From Zygophlyctis sp. KS116 (taxonomy: Eukaryota > Fungi > Chytridiomycota): 24,523 nt of DNA. A model generated the notes under the pieces. It was not told the origin of the DNA, searched no databases, and saw only the letters and a list, made by a program, of their open reading frames with translations. The position numbers and the translations under genes are program-made. Of this stretch, positions 4,157 to 24,523 are shown in pieces (the first letter of the stretch is position 1; each line of letters opens with the position of its first letter). The DNA is taken from the NCBI GenBank assembly GCA_054661495.1, contig BAAFSQ010000149.1, forward strand, positions 1 through 24,523, read 5' to 3'.

Positions 4157-6393
4157 ATGAAAGAAGAAAAAGTTCTGTTTGATGGAGACAATTATGAAGA
4201 GTTTCACATGAATCTAGTTGATCATTTGAAATCTAAAAAGCTATAGAAAACAATCAGAAAGGCAAGACCAGAAATGGAATGGCATCGTACTTTGGGTCAT
4301 ATGAATTACGATGACATATTAAAACTTGAAATAGTGGTAGAAGACATGAAAATAGAAGAAAAAGTACGAAGTGACTGTATAGTTTGCTTGATTAGCAAAA
4401 GCACAAAATATGGATTCAACAGGAAAACCTTCTATCCAAACGAGAAGGATCAATTTTTATCAGCTGGATGTTGGATTCATTGACGGGGTACCATTCATTT
4501 GCTTCAACGATCATTACAGCGATTGTACACACACTGCGTTCATGAAACGGAAGGGCGAAGCCGCAGAGGAATTAAAGAAATATCTTGACTTTATCAAATC
4601 GCAGTATGATATATAGTTAAAACCTTAAAATCTGACGGTGGACCAGAGTACAGGGGTGCTTTTGATAAAGAGTGTACTGAACAAGACATACAACATTTAA
4701 TAACTACAGCCTATACTAAGGAACAATTAGGAAGGGGGGAGAGAGGAAATGGCAGCATGCATGTTAAATGACAGTGAGCTACCAGCCGAAAAATATAGTA
4801 GAGATGCAATGCTATATGCGACCTACATCAGAAATCGAGCCCCTAAAAGCATAGATGGAAAGCTTATAACACCTGTTGAGGCGTTTACTGGCAAAAGACT
4901 AAAGTTTACAAATTTAAAGAGATTCGGTGAGATTTGTTGCACGGTAAGGGACAAAATACAACGAAGAGATCGTCACACGTTGGTTCCAAAGGCCGATCAG
5001 AGTATATTTATGGGGTTAGATCCTATGGGTTACATAGTTGAACTACCTTCAGGGAGACGGATTACCTCTTGCCATGTAAAGTTTATGAAGAGAAATCCGA
5101 TGGTTAATTCTACCCCTAAATTTGATGACGATGACTCATCAGAGGAGGAGGAGGAAGTGAAAAATCCTGATAGAAGGGAAAATGATGACGATAATGAGGG
5201 GTCAGAGGAAACATTTGAAACTCCTTGCACAAGTCCAAAAACAACAAAGCCAGCAGAACTTGGCTATGATTACCAAGAAAGAGTCAAATGCCACCCAAGG
5301 ACATCAATTTGAATGTGCCTTTGGAGAACATCGTTTGAGAATTAGATAAAAGAACGACGAGAAAAAATCCAACTGCAAATTTGTTTACAACATGCCCTAC
5401 TCCCTCTACTTACCATGAAACCATTTCAGGTAAGAAAGCAAAAGAGTGGAATGCGGCAATTAAAGCTGAATTATCCCAATTAACAATGAATGGTACTTTT
5501 GGACAACCAGAGCCATTGCCCCAAGATCGTAAAGCAGTTAAGAGCAAATGGGTATTTAAAACAAAATATCTCCAAGATAACTCAATTGATAAATATAAAA
5601 CGAGATTGTGTGCGAAGGGGTACACACAGAAAGAAGGGATGGATTTTGAGGACATCGTTGCACCAGTGGTGTCCTTTATAAGTTTAAGGATTATTTTAAG
5701 CATGGCAGTGAAATTGGACTTCAGTATTACTGTGTATGATATAACAGGAGCTTATCTTTATCCGTATTTAGATAAAGAATTATATATGGAAATACCTTTG
5801 GGATTTAAAGGGGCATATAAGGAAGGGGACATCCTAAAATAACTCAAGGGATTTATGGACTGAAACATAGTGGAAAACTCTGGTATGAAAATTTAAAAGA
5901 TACATTGATGGATATGAATTTCTCTCAAAGTCTCTTTGATGGCGGTGTTTATTTTAAGAATACTTGAAAGGTTAACTATTTATCAAGAAAGATACATTAA
6001 CGAGAAAGTAACGAAATTCAATTTAGAGACCTCTAAGGATGAAAAAATTCCTTTGTCGGAAGGATTCGATGTTAGCAATGAGGAAGAAATTGAAAGAGAT
6101 GTTCCTTATTTAGAACTCATTGGCTAGGATACGCAGCTAAAACAAGCAGACCAGATATCGCTTTTGCCTTCGGATATCTTTCTAGATATAGTCATAAAGT
6201 CTCCAAAGCATCATGGGAAGGTGCAAAACGCACGTTAAAGTATTTGAAGATGACAATGAGTTGTCAAAGATAGAAATTTTGAATAATGGGATATTCGGAT
6301 GCTTCATTCAATCACGATAGAAATATAAGAATTGCAGGACATGTTATACTACTGAGAAATCATTTAATTCACTGGCGCTCAAGAAAGCAGGCC
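4157..6393 (+). mobile_element. Degenerate Ty1/copia gag-pol relic (gag N-terminus, integrase, RT, RNase H start)
   Basis: FDGDNYEEF..L*KTI (gag N-term); WHRTLGH..CIVC; KSDGGPEY..TAYTKEQLGRGER (integrase core); KSKWVFKTK, KTRLCAKGYTQ, APVV, DITGAYL, IYGLKHSG (RT); RPDIAF; GYSDASF..IHWRSRKQ (RNase H). IN-RT-RH order is copia-type. Multiple stops, frameshifts and deletions. Confidence 0.93.
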
Positions 6394-8269: not shown

Positions 8270-9085
8270 ATGTCTCAATCTACTCCCCCACCAGCACCGT
8301 CCCAAGCTATTGCATCATCTTCTGATCCAAGTCCCTCTTCCATCAAACTTTCTTTCGAACCCAAACTCGTTGGACAAGAGACTTTCTTTCAATGGAAATT
8401 CATGCTAAAGGTTATTCTACTTGCTTCAAATCTCTGGGATTCTCCCGATGATTCTCCAAAGAATGAGCCTCTAGCATTGCTCGCCATCACTTCAAATGTC
8501 TCTGAAGGAGTTCGATCCTTTCTGATCGATGCTACCACCGCTAAACAGTGCTGCATCATTCTTAAAACAAAGTACGCGTCCAAATCTATCCCCACTCAAA
8601 TTCAAACTATAAAGGAACTGTGCGCTTTCTCTTTTGTTTCTGGTAACTTCCAAAACGGGTTTACTAAACTCAGAGACCTTATTCGTACCTTTAAAGCCGC
8701 CAATGAGGAAAGCGAAACGATTAAATTTTCAACACTTGTTGCCCTCATTGCACTTTCCGCCCTACCAGCCGATTTTTCTTCCATTCGAACGGTACATCAG
8801 AAACAGTCAACTTCTGCCTTAAAAGTTCAAGCAAAACATATGGATAAAAAATTTCAGCACAATTCCTCCTGCTGGACATGTCATCCTGAAATGGCCCCGA
8901 TATGTGTAATTGGCCGTGGTCAAGGCCTAAGACGTTTTAAACACAAGCAATTTTCTCACGTATGCCCCCAACCTAAACAAGATCATGCAAATGTGGCTTT
9001 CACCGCACATAACGTGTTTAACAACACCTTCTCATGGATCCTGGATTCTGGTGCCACACAGCACATGTGTCATGGTAAATGCTAG
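8270..9085 (+). mobile_element. Ty1/copia gag plus aspartic protease start (truncated)
   Basis: KLVGQETFFQWKFMLKVILLASNLWD (gag N-term); DATTAKQCCIILKTKY; H..CWTCHPE knuckle-like segment; WILDSGATQHMC protease motif, then a stop. Confidence 0.9.
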
Positions 9086-9602
9086 TTAGGCATCCCAAAT
9101 CCAAAGAGTAATCCTTTTATTCGGCTTGTGAAAAAGATAATGGCGGATCGATCAAGACCTTCTTATAATAATTTTGTTTCAACTATTTGCTTGAAAAACA
9201 AGAGCACAAGCCTGGAGTTAACGAGGCAGTCATCTTTGAGCAACGTTCGATTCAAAAAAGTTTTAGCTTCATGAGCATCCTGAAGAAGAGAAAATAATTA
9301 AAGTCTCCTTAATGAATACGACTTCCGAACCCCTAACCTTAGAGCTGCTAGAGATGTCTTACCTTTTTAGATTGAAATTCAAATTCTCACGCTTTAAAAA
9401 CGTTTTTAAACATCGAACTTCTGGTCAGGGAACAGTTTCTCTACGACCTCAGCTAAAAGAATCAAGAATCTATGATGGAATAAGTCATTGGTCAAATAAT
9501 TTTATTTACTGAATACTTTTTTTCCTCCAAAGCGAGTCACGACTGGGTCACCCCTAAAATTTTACTGGTGGTGAGACTGAGAGATATTATCCGATTTCCG
9601 AA

Positions 9603-11130
9603 ATGGCAGCCCAAGAAAGGGTCGAAAGGGGTATAAATGTAAGTCCAAATACTAAGTGCATTAGAATCTCATGATGGAGACGAATGCAAGGCTTCAACTA
9701 AGGGCTTTGGAATACTCTACAGAAAATTCTAACACAAGAAAGCAATATGACCGATATTAGGGCCCAAAGAAAAACTCTAGTGGTACAAAATCCAGAACTC
9801 ATTCAAAATTTGGATGCCCTAAACCCATCAGAATGTGTTAAAGGCATTGCGACAGTAAAACAGTATGTAACTTCCATCGTGGACCTATGGGAGCAGGTGA
9901 AATTAAGTAGTAAAACTTATCACTAGCAGAGACAATTTGAGAATAATTTACATCCTCACCCAAGAACTAAGGCAGTAAAAATATTTCTTGATAGACTCAC
10001 TATAGATTGATGCAGGAAACAATGTTTTTTATCATGCAGTAAAATTTATCACTGAGAAAGGCAAAATGAATAAGTTCAAAATGACATTGATGAAAGGAAT
10101 GCTCAGGTAGGAAATTAAATTAAATTATAAGACATAGAAATATTGATTTGTGCCCTGTTAGTGCTCTTGCATTGCATTTACTTCATCGTTTTCACATCCA
10201 GAAAGAAAAACGACCGGAATTCGCAGACCGCTCTCTATGGTAGAACAGAATGATATTAAAGGTAAGGTAAGCATTATGAGTATTTAGATTATAGGGACAT
10301 GGTCTACAAGAAAAAAAATATGAAAAGCAGAGAGAATATATTCTTAAAGGTTACAAAGCCTTTGACGTAAATTGTAACAAGTAGGTTTCATAATAAACTA
10401 TTAGGTAAGTCATGTTGGGAGAGCACGTGGAGCCATAGATTTAGCTCATGCAGGTGTTTCTCAATCAGCAATTGAACGAATGGGGTTTTGGGGTCTAGAT
10501 GCTTTGAATGGTTCATATTTGAGTAAAGTTCTACCAGTGGAGTGTCTCCACGTTTTGGCAGGCTATTCAAAAGACGAGTCCTATTTTTTACACAGAAGTG
10601 TCATCCAGCCACCGCAGGAGCTGCAGGAAGAGATTTTTCCCTGGATAAATAAGTTGGAGAAAGATTGTAAAACTAGTATTGAACAAAACGGTACAGAATA
10701 CTCAGGTAAGCACAATTTTTTTACACACTAAGGCCTTGGACTAAAAAAAATACTCAGGTTTCTTAGGATAGTAATTTTACAAGATGCAGCTATTTATCTA
10801 AGCCAAGAACTGGCATTTTGATGTGGCCGTGTTCAAGTCTGAGATATTTAAAGCGTTTGCTAGGACTCTAGGAGCTGGTATGGAGGAAGCTCAAATCCCT
10901 AGGAACGAATTACTAGAAAGGGTAAAACCCACACAATTTATAAATAGGCAGTTCCTGCACTTAAACAAAGTCTTGATGCAATTCAACAAACTTTGCTGCT
11001 AGGCGAACATGCTCGTGCTAGCATGTCACTCTCAGTTGAGCAGCAGTGCCTTGTCAATGATTTCCGTAATTGGCGAGAAGTCCAGTCTTTCCTCAAGATG
11101 TGTGGTGTCTGGTCTGACAGAAATTTGTTT
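9603..11130 (+). pseudogene. Crypton / NDC10-domain-II-like tyrosine recombinase, intron-containing, decayed
   Basis: After splicing: NTRKQY; TVKQYVTSIVDLWEQQ..NLHPHPR; GKMNKF..LRHRNIDLCPVSALALHLLHRF; PEF..W; VSHVGRARGA (HxxR)..IERMGFW..NGSYL (W, catalytic Y)..LPVE..LAGY; IFPW; LRIVILQDAA. The Box-I Arg region appears deleted near 10000. Confidence 0.87.
9639..10947 (+). other. Series of ultra-short GT-AG introns: 9639-9664 (26 nt), 9897-9926 (30), 10107-10131 (25), 10262-10294 (33), ~10381-10404 (24), 10706-10732 (27), 10922-10947 (26)
   Basis: Each is an AT-rich GT...AG segment whose removal eliminates a stop or frameshift and rejoins conserved Crypton motifs. The 10381 case additionally needs a 1-nt deletion. 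Confidence 0.78.
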
Positions 11131-12569: not shown

Positions 12570-13890
12570 AGTAAATTTATGTCGCGCTAATGAACCTAAA
12601 ACAGAAGGGGAGATGCTTCAAGTTGCCAATGTAGCGGAATCTTTTTTTAACGAAGCTTTATAGTCAAAATGGTCAAATTATTCTAACCTTTCTAATTTCT
12701 TTATTCGATTATCATAACGAATGACTACAAATACTACACTGATAATGATTGCTCTTATTAAGAAGATAGTAAGTACACGGAGTAAATAAACTGCCGTCTG
12801 TAATTTTCGTTCATGGGTTACCATTTTTTCACGGAAAATTGATTTTGTTGAGTAATGATGTCTAGACATTAAAATGGATGTCAAGTCTGATTTGATTATC
12901 GAAACTCCGACTTTCTTATCTAAAACGGACATGAAAAGAAAAACAGCTCAAAACGAGAAAAAGAAGAATCCTCCGCTATACCAGACTGCTACTGATGAGA
13001 GGATTTATGAGCCGAGAAGAAAAGCTGTTACTAGCTGGTTCTACTATTGTCAATGCTGCTGATGCTGGTACTACTTCTGTGGATGCTGATGGTGCTGGGA
13101 CCATTATAATGGATGCTGCTGAAGCTGTGACTACCGTAGTGGATGCTGCTGATTCTGGTACTACTGCTGCTGATGCTGCTGAATCTGTTACTATTGTTGT
13201 GGATGCTGCTGAAGCTGTTGCTACTGTTGTGAATTCTGCTGATTCTGGTACTACTGTTGTTGATGCTGAGAAAATTATAGTAGATGCAGCTGATGCTGGA
13301 TAACCCTTTGTAGATTTATTTAACATAATCCATACGTCTTATCATTGTCATAAGAAAAAGAAGGTTTATATAGCTGATCAGAATGGACAAATGAAGTTTG
13401 ATCAAATTTTTGATCAAATTGAGGCACTCAGAAACTTGTCAACTAATGAAAAATTGAATGCAGAGTACTCCAAACTCCCTGGAACCGTACTTAGAATCGC
13501 TGGTGCTCTACATAGAAAAGGTAATTTACAAACGAATGGATACGAGGCTTTAAAAAAAGAGCTGCTACGTGAATAGGTATAACTTAGCTACTTATTTTAT
13601 GATGCAAAGGTATGATTATGTACAGTGATTGTTTTCAGAATTATTTTTAAAGATGGTGTTTTATGAGAATTAGAACCCCCTGACATCATATATGATTTAG
13701 AAGAATTTGTGTTAAAAGAATCTTATATTGCCCTGGAATCAGCTTTTTTGCGTCGGATATAATAAGAGGACGTAGATTAGAGCAATCCCTTATCAAAAGA
13801 ACTATGGAATTAATTGGACTTGCAGGATTTGGCGAAGTATCATTTTCTTTGAGTCAGTCTAATCGAAACAGAGGAGTAATTTTTTAAATT
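12570..13890 (+). pseudogene. Decayed ORF of an unassigned multicopy family (tentatively DUF3987-like) carrying a 10-aa repeat insert
   Basis: ORFs 12995 and 13391 share a frame across one TAA. Motifs RGFMSR and AEYSKLPGTVLRIAGALH; C-terminal ELIGLAGFGEV. Homologous fragment at 21517-21620. Confidence 0.45.
13034..13300. repeat. 30-bp minisatellite, 7 full units plus partials (DAADSGTTVV)
   Basis: Units such as gatgctgctgattctggtactactgttgtg starting at 13052. Open on both strands. Confidence 0.92.
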
Positions 13891-14689: not shown

Positions 14690-14785
14690 AAAATTATTTA
14701 TAGAAATCACGACTATAAATAGAGACAATCTATAAATAGATTCTTTACCTTTTCTAAAACAACATTTTTCTCGATATCAGCACCA
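14690..14785 (+). mobile_element. Degenerate LTR 3' part plus PBS, paralog of 8124-8269
   Basis: actataaatagagacaatctataaatagattctttaccttttct aligns with actataaatagcgcactactattaatagattcttctaccttttt. PBS cgatatcagcacca overlaps the ATG. Confidence 0.72.
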
Positions 14786-15480
14786 TGTCTTCCAATAACA
14801 CTCAAGTTAAATCTTTTACTATCGAACCTCAACTCTCTGGCCAAGAGACATTCTTCCAGTGGCAATTCATGATAAAAATTCTTTTATCAGCATCCGGTCT
14901 TTGGGACACTGACGATTCCCCAAAAGACGACTCAACCGCACTCTTGGCAATCACTGCAAATGTAACAGAAGAGGTCAGATCTCTTCTAATTGATGCTACT
15001 ACTGCAAAACTTTGTTGGGCCATCCTCAAAACTAAATTCGCATCAAAGTCTATTCCTCTCCCGATTCAAACCATTAAGGATCTCTGTTCTTTTCAACTAG
15101 TAACAGGAGACTTCCAACAAGGGTTTATCTATTTACACAGGCTTACGAAGCGTTTAAGTATTATGCTAGTATGGCTTCAAACTGACACAATATGTTTATC
15201 ACATCAATAAGAATTGATTCTGGGGGGATATTCACTTCTGATAAATTTAGAGAATTGTACACCGTATTATACGCAGTGCACAATTTTAACATGATTCCTA
15301 GACTTCATCATGATGGTGAGGATGGAAAATCCCCATGGGAATATTGGTACGGGCATAAACCATCAGCCAACCGTTTACACGCGTTTGGTTGCCTGGCTTT
15401 TAAGTACATTCCTAAGAAACAGAGATCCAAACTAACCTCCAAATCTAAATTGAGAATCTTTAGAGTTGGTATATCATCTT
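14785..15480 (+). mobile_element. Ty1/copia relic (gag paralog of 8270 joined to integrase pieces)
   Basis: LSGQETFFQWQFMIKILLSASGLWD..DATTAKLCWAILKTKFASKS; RIDSGGIFTS; YAVHNFN..SPWEYWYGHKP..LHAFGCLAF..IPKKQRSKL. Confidence 0.88.
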
Positions 15481-15499
15481 GAAATGCTTCTAATTTCAA

Positions 15500-16344: not shown

Positions 16345-17200
16345 TTTTAACCCTAATTCAGCACTTGAAATTAAAGCATACAGGATAAGATGATACTACT
16401 GTATCTAAGCAATCTCTATTGATATCTGATGCTGCATCCAATAATACCTACGACTGTTTTCGATGGATTGTTAGCGAGAACCGGGAACTAACTTTTTGTG
16501 AAAAAGAATTGGTGAGACATCACACTAGAGGAAATATAACGAGTAGTACATTGAAGATTATGCAAGTTGTAGAGCAAGATCTCGCTTAGTCTCTTCCTGT
16601 TAAATTTGGGGTTTCTTTTGATGGATGGAGTGAATTTGGTATTCATGATTTAGCTGTTTTTGCAGTTGGACCAGGGTTGCGAAAGGATCTACCAGTACTA
16701 ATGGATTTCTCGCCATTTCAACAAGAGAATGATCTGTCTGCTGATCAACAAAGAAAATATCTAAATACTTTGTTAAAATATTATCAAAGATACGAAGATG
16801 ATGTCATTTATCTTGTAGGGGATAATTGTTTAACTAATTTGAAACTTTCTCGTAATATGAGGATTCCTTTGATTGGTTGTCATAGTCACAAACTCAATCT
16901 GGCGGTTAAAAGATGGCTTGGTATTGTTGGCCGCGCTAAAAACAATGAAGATACTAGAACTGATGAACAAAAATATCGATGTTTGCTGCTAGAAAAGTTA
17001 TCAAAATTAATGTCCAAGATGAAGACAATCAAAGGAAAGCCAAGTTGGAGGAGTACACGGATTATGTTGCTATTAAATCCAACGAGACTCGTTGGAATGG
17101 AAGCTATCGAATGGTCGAAAGATATCTTAAATTCCATGCTTCATTATTTGAGATGGTGGCAGATGATAGTGCTGTAGGAAGGGAAATTGCCAGAACCTCA
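16345..17200 (+). mobile_element. hAT transposase relic (BED-finger tail plus catalytic N-half)
   Basis: LIQHLKLKH; LPVKFGVSFDGWS..AVFA; YLVGDNCLTN; PLIGCHSHKLNLAV (CxxH); NETRWNG. Confidence 0.88.
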
Positions 17201-17229
17201 CCTTATTCTGATGATAAACACGGAATACC

Positions 17230-17595
17230 AATGCTTCGTCGGTTTATTCGAGGTTTTTTTGAAAATGAATTTCATACAATAATTCGTTTTATAGAAGGGA
17301 CATTTCAAGCTGCCTCCTCCGGATTCAAACAACTTATTGTGCTCAGAACATATCTCAGATCAACTCATGAATACATTACTTGTGGTTTTGCTCTACTGAC
17401 TGGCAAATTAGAGTCATTACATGACGAGCTTCTAGGGGCGGTTCAAGTCGTTTTACAGGTACCTTGGAAGCCTAATTATTTTACCTCTGATTTTGAAATG
17501 GCAATTATCAATTCAATTCATAAGAAACTTCCTGAAACTCGCTTTGTGGGGTGTTTTTTCCATTTTATGCAGGCTTTATGAAAGAAAATGATAGA
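17230..17595 (+). mobile_element. MULE transposase catalytic-core fragment
   Basis: FIEGTF..GFKQ..FALLTGK..TSDFEMAIINS..GCFFHFMQAL*KK. Confidence 0.88.
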
Positions 17596-20357: not shown

Positions 20358-21115
20358 ATTTTTCATTATCATCAATATTCATGGATGGCAACTCATCATC
20401 ATCTTCACTTAGAACTTCTAGAAGCATCTCTAAAGTCACTTCTCTATCCTCTACATGCCCGTCGTCGTCCAAATTTTTGATGAATTTAATATTTTTCTAA
20501 TTCACCATCTTCTAAGTTAGTAATATTTAAATTCCAGAACCAGGATTTAGGACTGCTCAGTTTAGCCATAGTTAACTTTGGTTCACCCTGCCTCTGTGGC
20601 CTTTTTTCGATAAGTTGATTGAGTGCGGCAACTCCTTCGGCAATCTTAAGCCGCCAATGGTCTCTCCGAATTGGAATTATTATTCCTAAGTATTTCCCTG
20701 TAGCTGCGTATTTCATGGTACCATGCTCTTATATTATCATCTACATTCGTTTTAGGATCGGAGGTATTAATCCATTGGCATAATCTAGAATTCTTTCCTT
20801 AATTGATCTGTATTCTGATTCCTTGAGTACCCATTTGGATGATTATTAATGTATTCATTAGACTTCTTCTTTCTTTTATGCATTAGTTTACTGATTAAAT
20901 AAATTCTTAACATAATAGACGAAAATCACCCGCTCCAACAAGTCTCTTCTATTATAAGACGTCATCATCTTGGTTATTCTTACATATCGACCTAGTACTG
21001 ACCATGCACGCTCGCATGTTGCCCCATCGGTATTGCCAACTCCTAAAAAGTACTTGGGGTTCATAACCCAGGAGCACGGGAAAGTATATGTCTTAACATG
21101 CATAGCATTGACCAA
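20358..21115 (-). mobile_element. Kyakuja-Dileera-Zisupton (KDZ) transposase C-terminal relic
   Basis: VNAMH....C....NPKYFLGVGNTDGATCERAWSVL..KMM...RRDLLE fits the KDZ H/C..GxGxxDGExxERxWS motif. Acidic tail LEVLSEDDDE..*. Confidence 0.82.
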
Positions 21116-21620: not shown

Positions 21621-21659
21621 CCTCCCTTAACCCTAAATAGAATCGGGAGGGGTTGTAAT

Positions 21660-22725
21660 TATTAGCCATTATACTTCTATTTTCTGGGGAGGGCTACCCT
21701 GCGAGCTATTTGTATTTGGACCGGAATTACCAAGAAAACGATAGGAAATTGGCCATTAAAGAGGGTTAGGTTCTGCACAACAAGTGTGGCCAGATGCCAC
21801 CGTTTCTCTGTGCTTGTGGCTTATATTAAAAGCAATAGAGAGACGACTATTGGAGCCTAAAAATGTGAAAAATGTTGATTTCCTAAGTTATTCTTCGAAT
21901 TTTTTTTATGCAGAAATTCTGCCTTGGATGATGATTTGAAGCTGACATTAATTCAAAAATCTCCCTCATTCAATAAAAGTCATATACCTTCTAAAAAAGA
22001 AGTCAGCTTTATTTTGGAAATGGTCACTTTCTTAGACACCCATTGATTCCTAATGAAAATGGTAGAAATTTGTCTTTTAAACAGATTCGAGATAAATCGT
22101 GGCAAGAAATCATGAAATATTGTTTAGAAAATGCGTACTATGATGCAAGTAACTATTTATGGAAAGAATGGTCTAAGAACTGCATGCTTTGGATGTGTGC
22201 AGATGAAGAGGGATATATCTGTAGGTACAGGACATCAATGTTTGCTGAGTTCCACTACAGAGGCAAATTAAAAAAGATGTCAAAACAGGATGCTTTACCA
22301 ATAAAATAGGCTGGGTATGCAGCTGTGAAGATTTTACTCACTCTGCGTACTTTTTAAGCCCACATTTAACCAAAGAATCAGATATGCCTAATCATTTTTC
22401 TGAAATCTGAATAAGGGATAACTTACCTTTTTTAAATCTTTTAAAACATTATGTAAGTATATTGACAGAGTCTCAAAACGATCAAGCGCAAGAAGTTTTA
22501 TCTAATCTAACAGTACAGCAACCGCTCTCTGAATACAAAAAGCTAAAAAATCTCTTAGATTGCCTTAGCAAATATTTAGAAGAAAATAAGCACAATGTAA
22601 AACAATTGAAAGTTTTAGACGAAAGCTTAGAAGAAGCTAAAACTTATCAAAATTCTGTTTCAAATTACCAGAAATCAAATCAAATTCCAAGAACTTATCT
22701 TAATAAATACACAATGTTTCTTTAA
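21660..22725 (+). mobile_element. MULE transposase relic (copy 1)
   Basis: FSGEGYPASYLYL; AQQVWPDATVSLCLWLILKAIERRL; HPLIP..EIMKYC..YLWKEW..RTSMFAEFHYR; ends SNQIPRTYLNKYTMFL*. Confidence 0.82.
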
Positions 22726-22764
22726 AATATTCTTTTTAGCAAAAAACTCGTTCTAAAATGAACC

Positions 22765-23193
22765 TATTCCAATGTTAAGTGGCGCGTCCGCGTGAGCGGG
22801 CGAAAAATGTCAAGTTTTGAACTATAGTAAGAAGGAAAATATTGATTGATTTATAGATTTTATTACAATATTCAAATTTAAAAAACTTAAGATATTCTAT
22901 TAGTAACATAATTTACAAATATATCCTGATTCTCCGTAAGTTTCCGAGACTTGAAATTTGAAACTTGAACTCTAAAACTCTCACATAAAGAGATAGAAGT
23001 TGAATGTTGAAAGTTGATACTTTCAACTTTCGGAAAATTAAAAAACTCTGAATAATCTAAGAAATTATTTCAAGTTTTTCAATTTGTTTATTATAATAAA
23101 ATCTATAAATCAATCCATCTTTTCCTTGTTCTTCTACTTGAAAATTGACATCTTACGCCCGCTCACGCGGACGCGCCACTTGGCATTGGAATA
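22765..23193. mobile_element. 429-bp foldback MITE with long TIRs (possible TA TSD)
   Basis: Left end tattccaatgttaagtggcgcgtccgcgtgagcgggcg versus reverse complement of right end tattccaatgccaagtggcgcgtccgcgtgagcgggcg. Inverted identity continues for ~130 bp and patchily towards the centre. TA at both ends. No ORF. Confidence 0.9.
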
Positions 23194-23315
23194 CATATTA
23201 TGTTGTTGAAGTATAAGTTTTTACAAAGAATAATTTTATAACAGTGTAAATTTAAAATTATATATACAAAAAAAAATTCAAAAATGAATCCATTCTTGGT
23301 TTCTTTCAGGTGATT

Positions 23316-24523
23316 TTATTGGAACATTGTGTATTTATTCAAATCGCTGCTCCAAGTTCTTGGTATTTTATTTGAGTCCAGATATTTAATCACTTCATGC
23401 AACTTGTTTGAATGCTCGTATTTTGATTCTCCGATATAGGCACTATAGATTTATTTTGGTCAATTTGGATCAATGGTACACAATCATTAATTTCTATCTG
23501 CGAAGCAAACTTTGGAAGATCAATGCTTTTGACCAAATGCTTCCATAAAAAGAATTGAGAATGTAGAAAATCAGAAGTTTGATTTGTTGAAAACTCCGTC
23601 GTATTTATTTTTTTCTGAGAAACCTCCCACTCTTTCTGAAACTCATGAAACCAGTATGGTGTTCGACGTTTAACTTTAGTTTGATTTAATTTTAAACGAA
23701 ACGGGTAAGATTTGGCCTTATAACAGTAGGTCAGCATTTCCAAACAGCTGAAATTCCTGATATCTAGATAAGAATTTTGAGTAGTATTATCATTTGGGAT
23801 TAAACTATGTTGTAGAAAGTGCTTCTTAACCATTTCCAATATTTCTGAGATTTGTGTTTTTGAAGGATGCCGAAGTTTGCCTGATGCTATTTCATCCTCA
23901 TTTTTTTTTTAAAATCTTCATTTATACAAGTTTACATGATTCCTTAAACGGTTACCTTATAGATTTGATTTCCTAAGGACCTGAAAGCCTTTTTTTAATC
24001 GCCCTCAATACATGATGCCACAAGCACAAATTTACAGTAGCGTTTGGCCATAAACTTTGAGCAGCTGCTATTTGGCCTCTTTCTTTATTCATCTTGATAG
24101 ATCTAGGCAAAATATTATTTTCTTTTAAACTATTAAACCTTAAATTCTTTTTACCATTTTGTTATCGCTGCTTTCCTATCATTTTCTTGAAATTTTCTCT
24201 CTAAATAGAAGTAGCTTCCTGGATAGCCTTCCCCTTCAAAAAGCAGTATCAACGCAAATAATTCGAATCCTTCCCTTTTTGACTTAAATGTTGAATCTAC
24301 AAATATGTAGAAGGAGTCAAGATTGACAAAGTTTGTTGTGAAATAAATGTGTTTTTGAGGAATTTCTAATACTTGAGAAGTACAACCAGAAGCAGTTAAA
24401 ACATCTATGCACGAATCATTATTTCCATATGCGTTATCACACTTAGTATTGAATTTGGAAGCATTTCATTGAGTTGATCTCTTTTAAGATTTTCCATTGC
24501 AAGTTGATTTATTTTTCTTAAAG
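23316..24523 (-). mobile_element. MULE transposase relic (copy 2; probably continues past window edge)
   Basis: IFVDSTF..FELFALILLFEGEGYPGSYFYL; NKERGQIAAAQSLWPNATVNLCLWHHVLRAIKKRL; HFLQHSLIP; SQFFLWKHLV (SWIM remnant); ends SNKIPRTWSSDLNKYTMFQ*. Confidence 0.85.

Follow-up and report, generated by a model that had tools for sequence, protein, structure and literature searches.

Position-conserved GT-AG segments of about 25 nt in a decayed Crypton copy point to very short introns spliced by the host

The window (the whole stretch of 24,523 nt analysed here) contains a broken gene for a tyrosine recombinase, the reading frame of which is interrupted by several segments with GT and AG ends. The question raised by this locus is whether these segments are spliceosomal introns of about 25 nt, as proposed in a first-pass annotation, and, if so, whether such introns belong to the mobile element or to its host. 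Six of the seven proposed segments were recovered exactly as GT-AG segments at breaks of the frame (26, 30, 25, 33, 27, and 26 nt), but the one given as about 24 nt is not a working intron. Likewise, all the local motifs quoted as becoming continuous after splicing are present, whereas removal of the seven segments gives no single open frame. A three-frame reading bore out the in-frame stops claimed for the segments with lengths divisible by three (30, 33, and 27 nt). When 10381-10404 (GT..AG) was cut out, the frame broke; four relatives have a phase-0 intron after AAG at this site, so intron 5 of the window has lost one junction G, leaving 23 nt (10382-10404). The 33-nt intron 4 is probably a 28-nt intron enlarged by a tandem repeat of GTAAG. 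The GC content of the segments is 26% overall versus 42% in the largest exon. An eighth candidate intron at 9975-10005 was rejected, as it overlaps a deletion junction and the relatives are coding there. The features of the window copy are shown in Table 1.

Table 1 Features of the Crypton copy in the window (9535-11052) and their counterparts in related copies.
Feature	Position	Strand	Details
Left-end motif AGTC-NN-GACT-RRGTC	9535-9549	+	short palindrome; L040 and C351 have it 5' of the start codon
Exon 1, short 12-codon coding leader	9603-9638	+	conserved at the protein level in L040 and C351
Intron 1, 26 nt, phase 0, GT-TAG	9639-9664	+	position common to L040 (28 nt) and C351 (25 nt)
Exons 2 and 3, fused remains	9665-9896	+	deletion of ~185 nt near 9760, one intron lost, frame shifted (L040 alignment)
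Intron 2, 30 nt, phase 0, GT-TAG, in-frame stop	9897-9926	+	column 109: L022 26, L040 28, C340 27 nt
Two exons, fused remains	9927-10106	+	deletion of ~260 nt near 10003; conserved Lys (10063) retained
Intron 3, 25 nt, phase 2, GT-AAG	10107-10131	+	column 246: found in 12 further copies at 25-31 nt; exact absence in L022
Exon, RH..CP motif	10132-10261	+	NDC10_II 96-134, E 0.002; premature TAG 10241-10243
Intron 4, 33 nt, phase 0, GT-TAG	10262-10294	+	column 289: L032, L039, and L040 28 nt each, L022 26 nt
Exon, GHG..Y..Q	10295-10381	+	
Intron 5 remnant, 23 nt, phase 0	10382-10404	+	column 320: L022 25, L032 28, L039 26, L040 27 nt
Largest exon	10405-10705	+	HxxR (10411, 10420), Trp (10489), Tyr at the nucleophile position (10516); NDC10_II 28 bits, over cut-off
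Intron 6, 27 nt, phase 1, GT-AAG, in-frame stop	10706-10732	+	column 420: L022 29, L039 27, L040 31 nt; also recognisable by eye in L032
Exon, LRIVILQDAA	10733-10921	+	small deletion and frameshift near 10808-10816
Intron 7, 26 nt, phase 0, GT-TAG	10922-10947	+	column 485: L022, L032, and L039 26, L040 29, L044 66 nt
Last exon, start only	10948-11052	+	homology stops; GCR1_C domain and right end missing

The window copy forms a clade (support 98/97; protein identity 59-78%) with L022 and L032 of the same genome and with L039 and L040, which come from freshwater or other metagenomes. All seven segments occur at the same codon position and in the same phase in two to four related copies, with the GT and AG ends retained, in the comparison that the first-pass annotation had proposed; intron 1 is shared with L040 and with a fragment on C351. 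The identity to the relatives was 75-88% at codon positions 1 and 2 and 46-74% at position 3, and the intron interiors were near the shuffled level of similarity in the three more distant copies, though not in the closest one. At the junction of intron 3, L022 reads straight across, so that the absence is exact. This site (L022:790-822) lacks the most widely shared of the Crypton introns (column 246) and is a candidate for exact intron loss in a DNA transposon; the absence is compatible with ordinary intron loss.

A profile built from 43 outside full-length proteins was aligned to the genomic DNA using an intron state with no length preference and a minimum of 15 nt. This alignment placed introns at 10107-10131, 10262-10294, the site at 10381, 10706-10732, and 10922-10947 in the 3' part and at 9897-9926 in the 5' part of the window; the same sites were chosen in the window and in the four relatives. 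Furthermore, single outside proteins (intronless or annotated, about 30% identical) recovered the same introns of L040. Aligner calls of long or GC-rich introns (47-1449 nt) in poorly conserved regions were taken as alignment artefacts. Contigs of four public DNA runs contained no intron-skipping joints at the locus, as expected for DNA. Among 43 called Crypton introns, the acceptors were 25 TAG, 16 AAG, and 2 CAG; a proportion of about 37% AAG is high for fungi, which speaks against the intron reading. A loose YTRAY branch-point word was found in 20 of the 43, a count made without a control in introns that are AT-rich.

The assignment to Crypton-type tyrosine recombinases made in the first-pass annotation was upheld by domain searches, which for the window gene were run exon by exon. 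The largest exon matched Pfam NDC10_II over the cut-off and a second exon gave a weak match, and sibling copies carry GCR1_C, including the clade members C732, C388, C340, and L040. The element is multicopy and dispersed in the assembly (12.7 Mb, 1175 contigs), which contains 32 matches to NDC10_II, many of them broken, and 22 to GCR1_C. With the largest exon as the query, 396 relatives were obtained; of ten long ones scanned, all ten had NDC10_II and seven had GCR1_C. This combination of an NDC10_II-type recombinase and GCR1_C defines CryptonF (PMC3212892), to which we assign the family. The named relatives are distant (Riccia, Heterosigma, Amoeboaphelidium, Aphanomyces, and Spongospora), a metagenome scan found no further relatives, and solved structures gave no match to the largest exon.

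The most informative relative is L040:95-2525, an ENA metagenome contig with an apparently intact CryptonF gene of 724 codons in ten exons. Its nine introns (28, 31, 28, 24, 30, 28, 27, 31, and 29 nt) are all GT-AG and consistent in phase, leaving no internal stops, and the product has NDC10_II, a C-terminal GCR1_C, and the full set of catalytic residues. L040 and the C388 copy of the host genome share 76% DNA identity. Words related to AGTC..GACT recur at the 3' end in L040, L022, and C340, and the terminal motif given in Table 1 may be a binding site of the recombinase or of GCR1_C. No long repeats flank the window gene, the right end of which is missing, and the L040 contig begins about 35 nt before the left motif. 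Elsewhere in the window, the flanks are a transposon graveyard (4749-5842, 8270-9085, 14785-15482, 16979-17581, and 20486-21115) with copia gag/pol and reverse transcriptase fragments, a transposase of the MULE type, and part of a KDZ transposase. The window also contains nested imperfect inverted repeats at 21634-24286 (arms up to 115 nt, centre near 22900-23050), which suggest an old fold-back duplication, and a 30-nt tandem repeat at 13035-13298 that is open on both strands with units rich in Ala, Thr, Val, and Asp.

The window copy itself, judged from its lesions, is a decayed and 3'-truncated pseudogene that is unable to encode an active enzyme. In addition to the premature TAG, the damaged donor of intron 5, and the frameshift listed in Table 1, the two larger deletions together remove two of the nine family introns, and the one near 10003 also takes the first catalytic Arg. 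Consequently, the copy does not hold the catalytic R-H-R-Y set in an open frame; the positions of the Lys, HxxR, Trp, and Tyr remain. No match to GCR1_C was found on contig C149, and homology to the intact relatives stops near 11050. The idea that the introns merely hide an intact gene was rejected, since no open frame results from removing the seven segments. A second, rearranged broken copy on C340 is nearly identical and shares both the TAG and the intron 5 donor lesion, and contigs from public DNA runs reproduce the window sequence, with runs X1 and X3 crossing the 9760 junction without difference, although one run is possibly the source of the assembly. An assembly error is therefore unlikely. 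A short telomere-like repeat of the GGGTTA type lies at a deletion junction of the sister copy on C340 (L036:8040-8060).

Subsequently, the size of introns in ordinary host genes was estimated from offsets between exon-wise HMM coordinates, without reading the intron sequences. The 24 usable junctions in nine chaperonin (CCT) genes gave a median of 27 nt, with 22 at 25-34 nt, one at 19 nt, and one at 208 nt. HSP70 offsets were 28, 28, 29, and 29 nt, plus one near 160 nt; the complex I 51K gene has an intron of about 29 nt, and Prp8 has a break of about 26 nt. The PROCN domain of Prp8 was found in the host assembly (E 3e-117), indicating that a spliceosome is encoded. Spans of the form AG/GTAA..TAG measured 24-33 nt in 60 of 94 cases among the donors listed (p ~4e-8). 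Crypton copies from the host genome gave 75 called introns at about 30 apparent positions, with a median of 28 nt and 70 of them at 23-33 nt. The CCT, HSP70, complex I, and Prp8 estimates support the proposal that the host spliceosome works on introns of about 25 nt, and the tiny introns are best taken as a trait of the whole host genome that is not special to the element. The earlier description of an intron-dense, host-adapted element with about seven introns was right in its tiny introns and is corrected in that the window copy is decayed and incomplete, the donor of its intron 5 is damaged, the full element has nine introns, and the property is genome-wide and not the element's own. Sequence of the host assembly occurs in freshwater DNA runs only. 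Two of the host introns are long, C5:59121-59330 (about 208 nt, chaperonin) and C6:23272-23413 (about 160 nt, HSP70), and are candidates for carrying snoRNAs. At C249:1115-4349, part of a chaperonin gene appears twice in tandem, the two stretches lying 1643 nt apart with the same match scores, which may reflect a real duplication or an assembly artefact.

Other Cryptons allowed intron length to be compared with intron position. L044, from another metagenome, has introns of 65 nt (72-136) and 66 nt (562-627) at columns 347 and 485, where introns are 25-32 nt here; at column 485, the window has 26 nt. Some positions thus appear older than the size regime, as far as one outside contig can indicate. 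L043 has introns of 37-41 nt at other positions, and L045, L047, and the P0050 gene are apparently without introns in the conserved core. Crypton intron length appears to follow the host, the longer class being represented by L044. Tiny introns also occur in other Crypton clades of the genome (L009, L013, L019, and L020), where they number up to about 11-12 and mostly occupy different positions, and P0050, an outside relative of L020 (37% identical), has none. We put forward tentatively, as a reading with somewhat less than an even chance, that the host represents an intron-rich chytrid lineage with previously unreported introns of about 27 nt throughout its genome, and that its Cryptons record introns shrinking to, or born at, the size limit of the host.

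Since the copy is a pseudogene with genuine indels, the segments might be decay indels that merely resemble GT-AG introns. In a spliced alignment of the window alone, GT-AG ranked first among the 256 possible pairs of end dinucleotides, yet only narrowly (219.7 versus 216.1 for the next; mean 185, sd 12; 158 without introns), so other pairs nearly match it and the comparison across copies is decisive. There, position, phase, and ends are kept in copies 60-80% identical in protein, and each site recurs in two to four diverged copies, whereas a GT with a frame-compatible AG 25, 28, or 31 nt downstream occurs by chance at 0.8% of positions. The stop-free frame of L040 in effect refutes decay, and the AT-rich composition of the segments and the same size class in host genes also speak against it. 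Nor did the three outcomes named beforehand as telling against introns appear: host introns do not lie well above 40 nt, intact copies do not lack the segments or their ends, and the spliced alignment does not gain gaps. We consider an origin by decay extremely improbable. Conserved position, phase, and ends, the precise absence in one paralog, and the intact nine-intron relative support real spliceosomal introns of about 25 nt, their splicing being deduced from genomic comparison.

The remaining alternatives accept the introns and concern the gene or the time of their arrival. The gene could be a domesticated host gene of the Ndc10/Cbf2 or Gcr1-like kind: it matches NDC10_II, yeast Cbf2, Gcr1, Msn1, and Hot1 are derived from CryptonF (PMC3212892), and nine introns are dense for a mobile element. 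This is very unlikely in view of the 32 NDC10_II matches in the genome, many of them broken, the near-identical broken copy on C340, the copia, MULE, and KDZ debris in the flanks, and the conserved terminal motifs; moreover, the intact relative keeps the catalytic residues, which domesticated genes lose (PMC3212892). We give equally little weight to the introns having been gained copy by copy after insertion, or in an introner burst, instead of being inherited with the element. Many of the roughly 30 apparent positions among the Cryptons of this genome occur in one clade only, and Glomhopper Cryptons lack consistent intron positions (PMC13465315), as later gain would predict. Within the window clade (5 rows, support 98/97), by contrast, the positions are fixed, columns 47 and 246 are common to distant clades, column 485 is shared with a Crypton from another sample, and the intron interiors are mutually dissimilar, unlike those of introners. 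The shared positions refute gain in each copy; this applies to per-copy gain, not to gain at the level of clades.

Taken together, it is very likely that the window holds a decayed copy, truncated at the 3' end, of a CryptonF rich in introns, whose functional form resembled L040 and had nine tiny, host-spliced introns with lengths set by the host. An intact element would be transcribed, and the U2-type spliceosome of the host would remove nine introns of 24-31 nt from between ten exons. The predicted product of 724 amino acids would combine a tyrosine recombinase core (R, K, HxxR, W, and Y) with a GCR1_C DNA-binding domain and, by analogy with known Cryptons, would excise the element as a DNA circle and reinsert it. 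Because such an element moves as DNA, its introns would be inherited by daughter copies, retaining position and phase while their interiors drift, and their length would track the host, in which the introns of ordinary genes measure about 27 nt.

Intron-bearing Cryptons and introns under 30 nt are both already known, and the window copy is an ordinary dead CryptonF that serves as a corroborating example. It provides transposon-based corroboration that introns of about 27 nt interrupt the genes of this organism, and a probable chytrid would join the few eukaryotes recorded with introns below 30 nt. Default gene finders would fragment the genes of this organism, and public catalogues list these Cryptons as single-exon pieces. 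Related elements in which an orthologous intron measures 26 nt in one and 66 nt in the other could provide test substrates for the minimal intron length. A literature search, with most subscription journals outside its scope, did not turn up any account of chytrids with introns of this size.

Introns in fungal Crypton genes are known, reportedly from the work of Goodwin et al. in 2003. The family described here resembles CryptonF of the Crypton-Cn1 type (Goodwin et al. 2003, as cited in PMC7175516; Kojima and Jurka 2011, PMC3212892), in its recombinase core matching NDC10_II, GCR1_C in siblings, catalytic residues in the intact relative, multiple copies, and apparent lack of long terminal repeats; CryptonF has terminal direct repeats of 4-6 bp and neither TIRs nor LTRs. 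The family described here differs in the nine introns of 24-31 nt, its copies yielded no recognisable direct repeats of 4-6 bp at the termini, and the window copy is broken and without GCR1_C. Glomhopper CryptonA elements of Glomeromycota, most of which bear introns (1-20) and many of which are truncated (PMC13465315), are likewise fungal Cryptons with introns and truncated copies, but those belong to DUF3504/CryptonA with no consistent positions, whereas these belong to NDC10_II/CryptonF with positions fixed within clades.

The host resembles the eukaryotes of ultra-short introns in having canonical GT-AG introns of less than about 30 nt, and differs from them in its many introns per gene, a retained complex I, and TAA and TAG as stops. 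Complex I has been lost in Rozella allomycis and microsporidia, and its presence speaks against a host of either kind. A search for TLC/NTT transporters gave no match, and neither did its controls. Ciliates, microsporidia, dicyemids, and myxozoans have ultra-short spliceosomal introns (PMC13644364), as does R. allomycis, with about 30 nt in S23 (PMC6349667). The medians of 22-27 nt in myxobolids (PMC13644364) match the 27 nt of the host.
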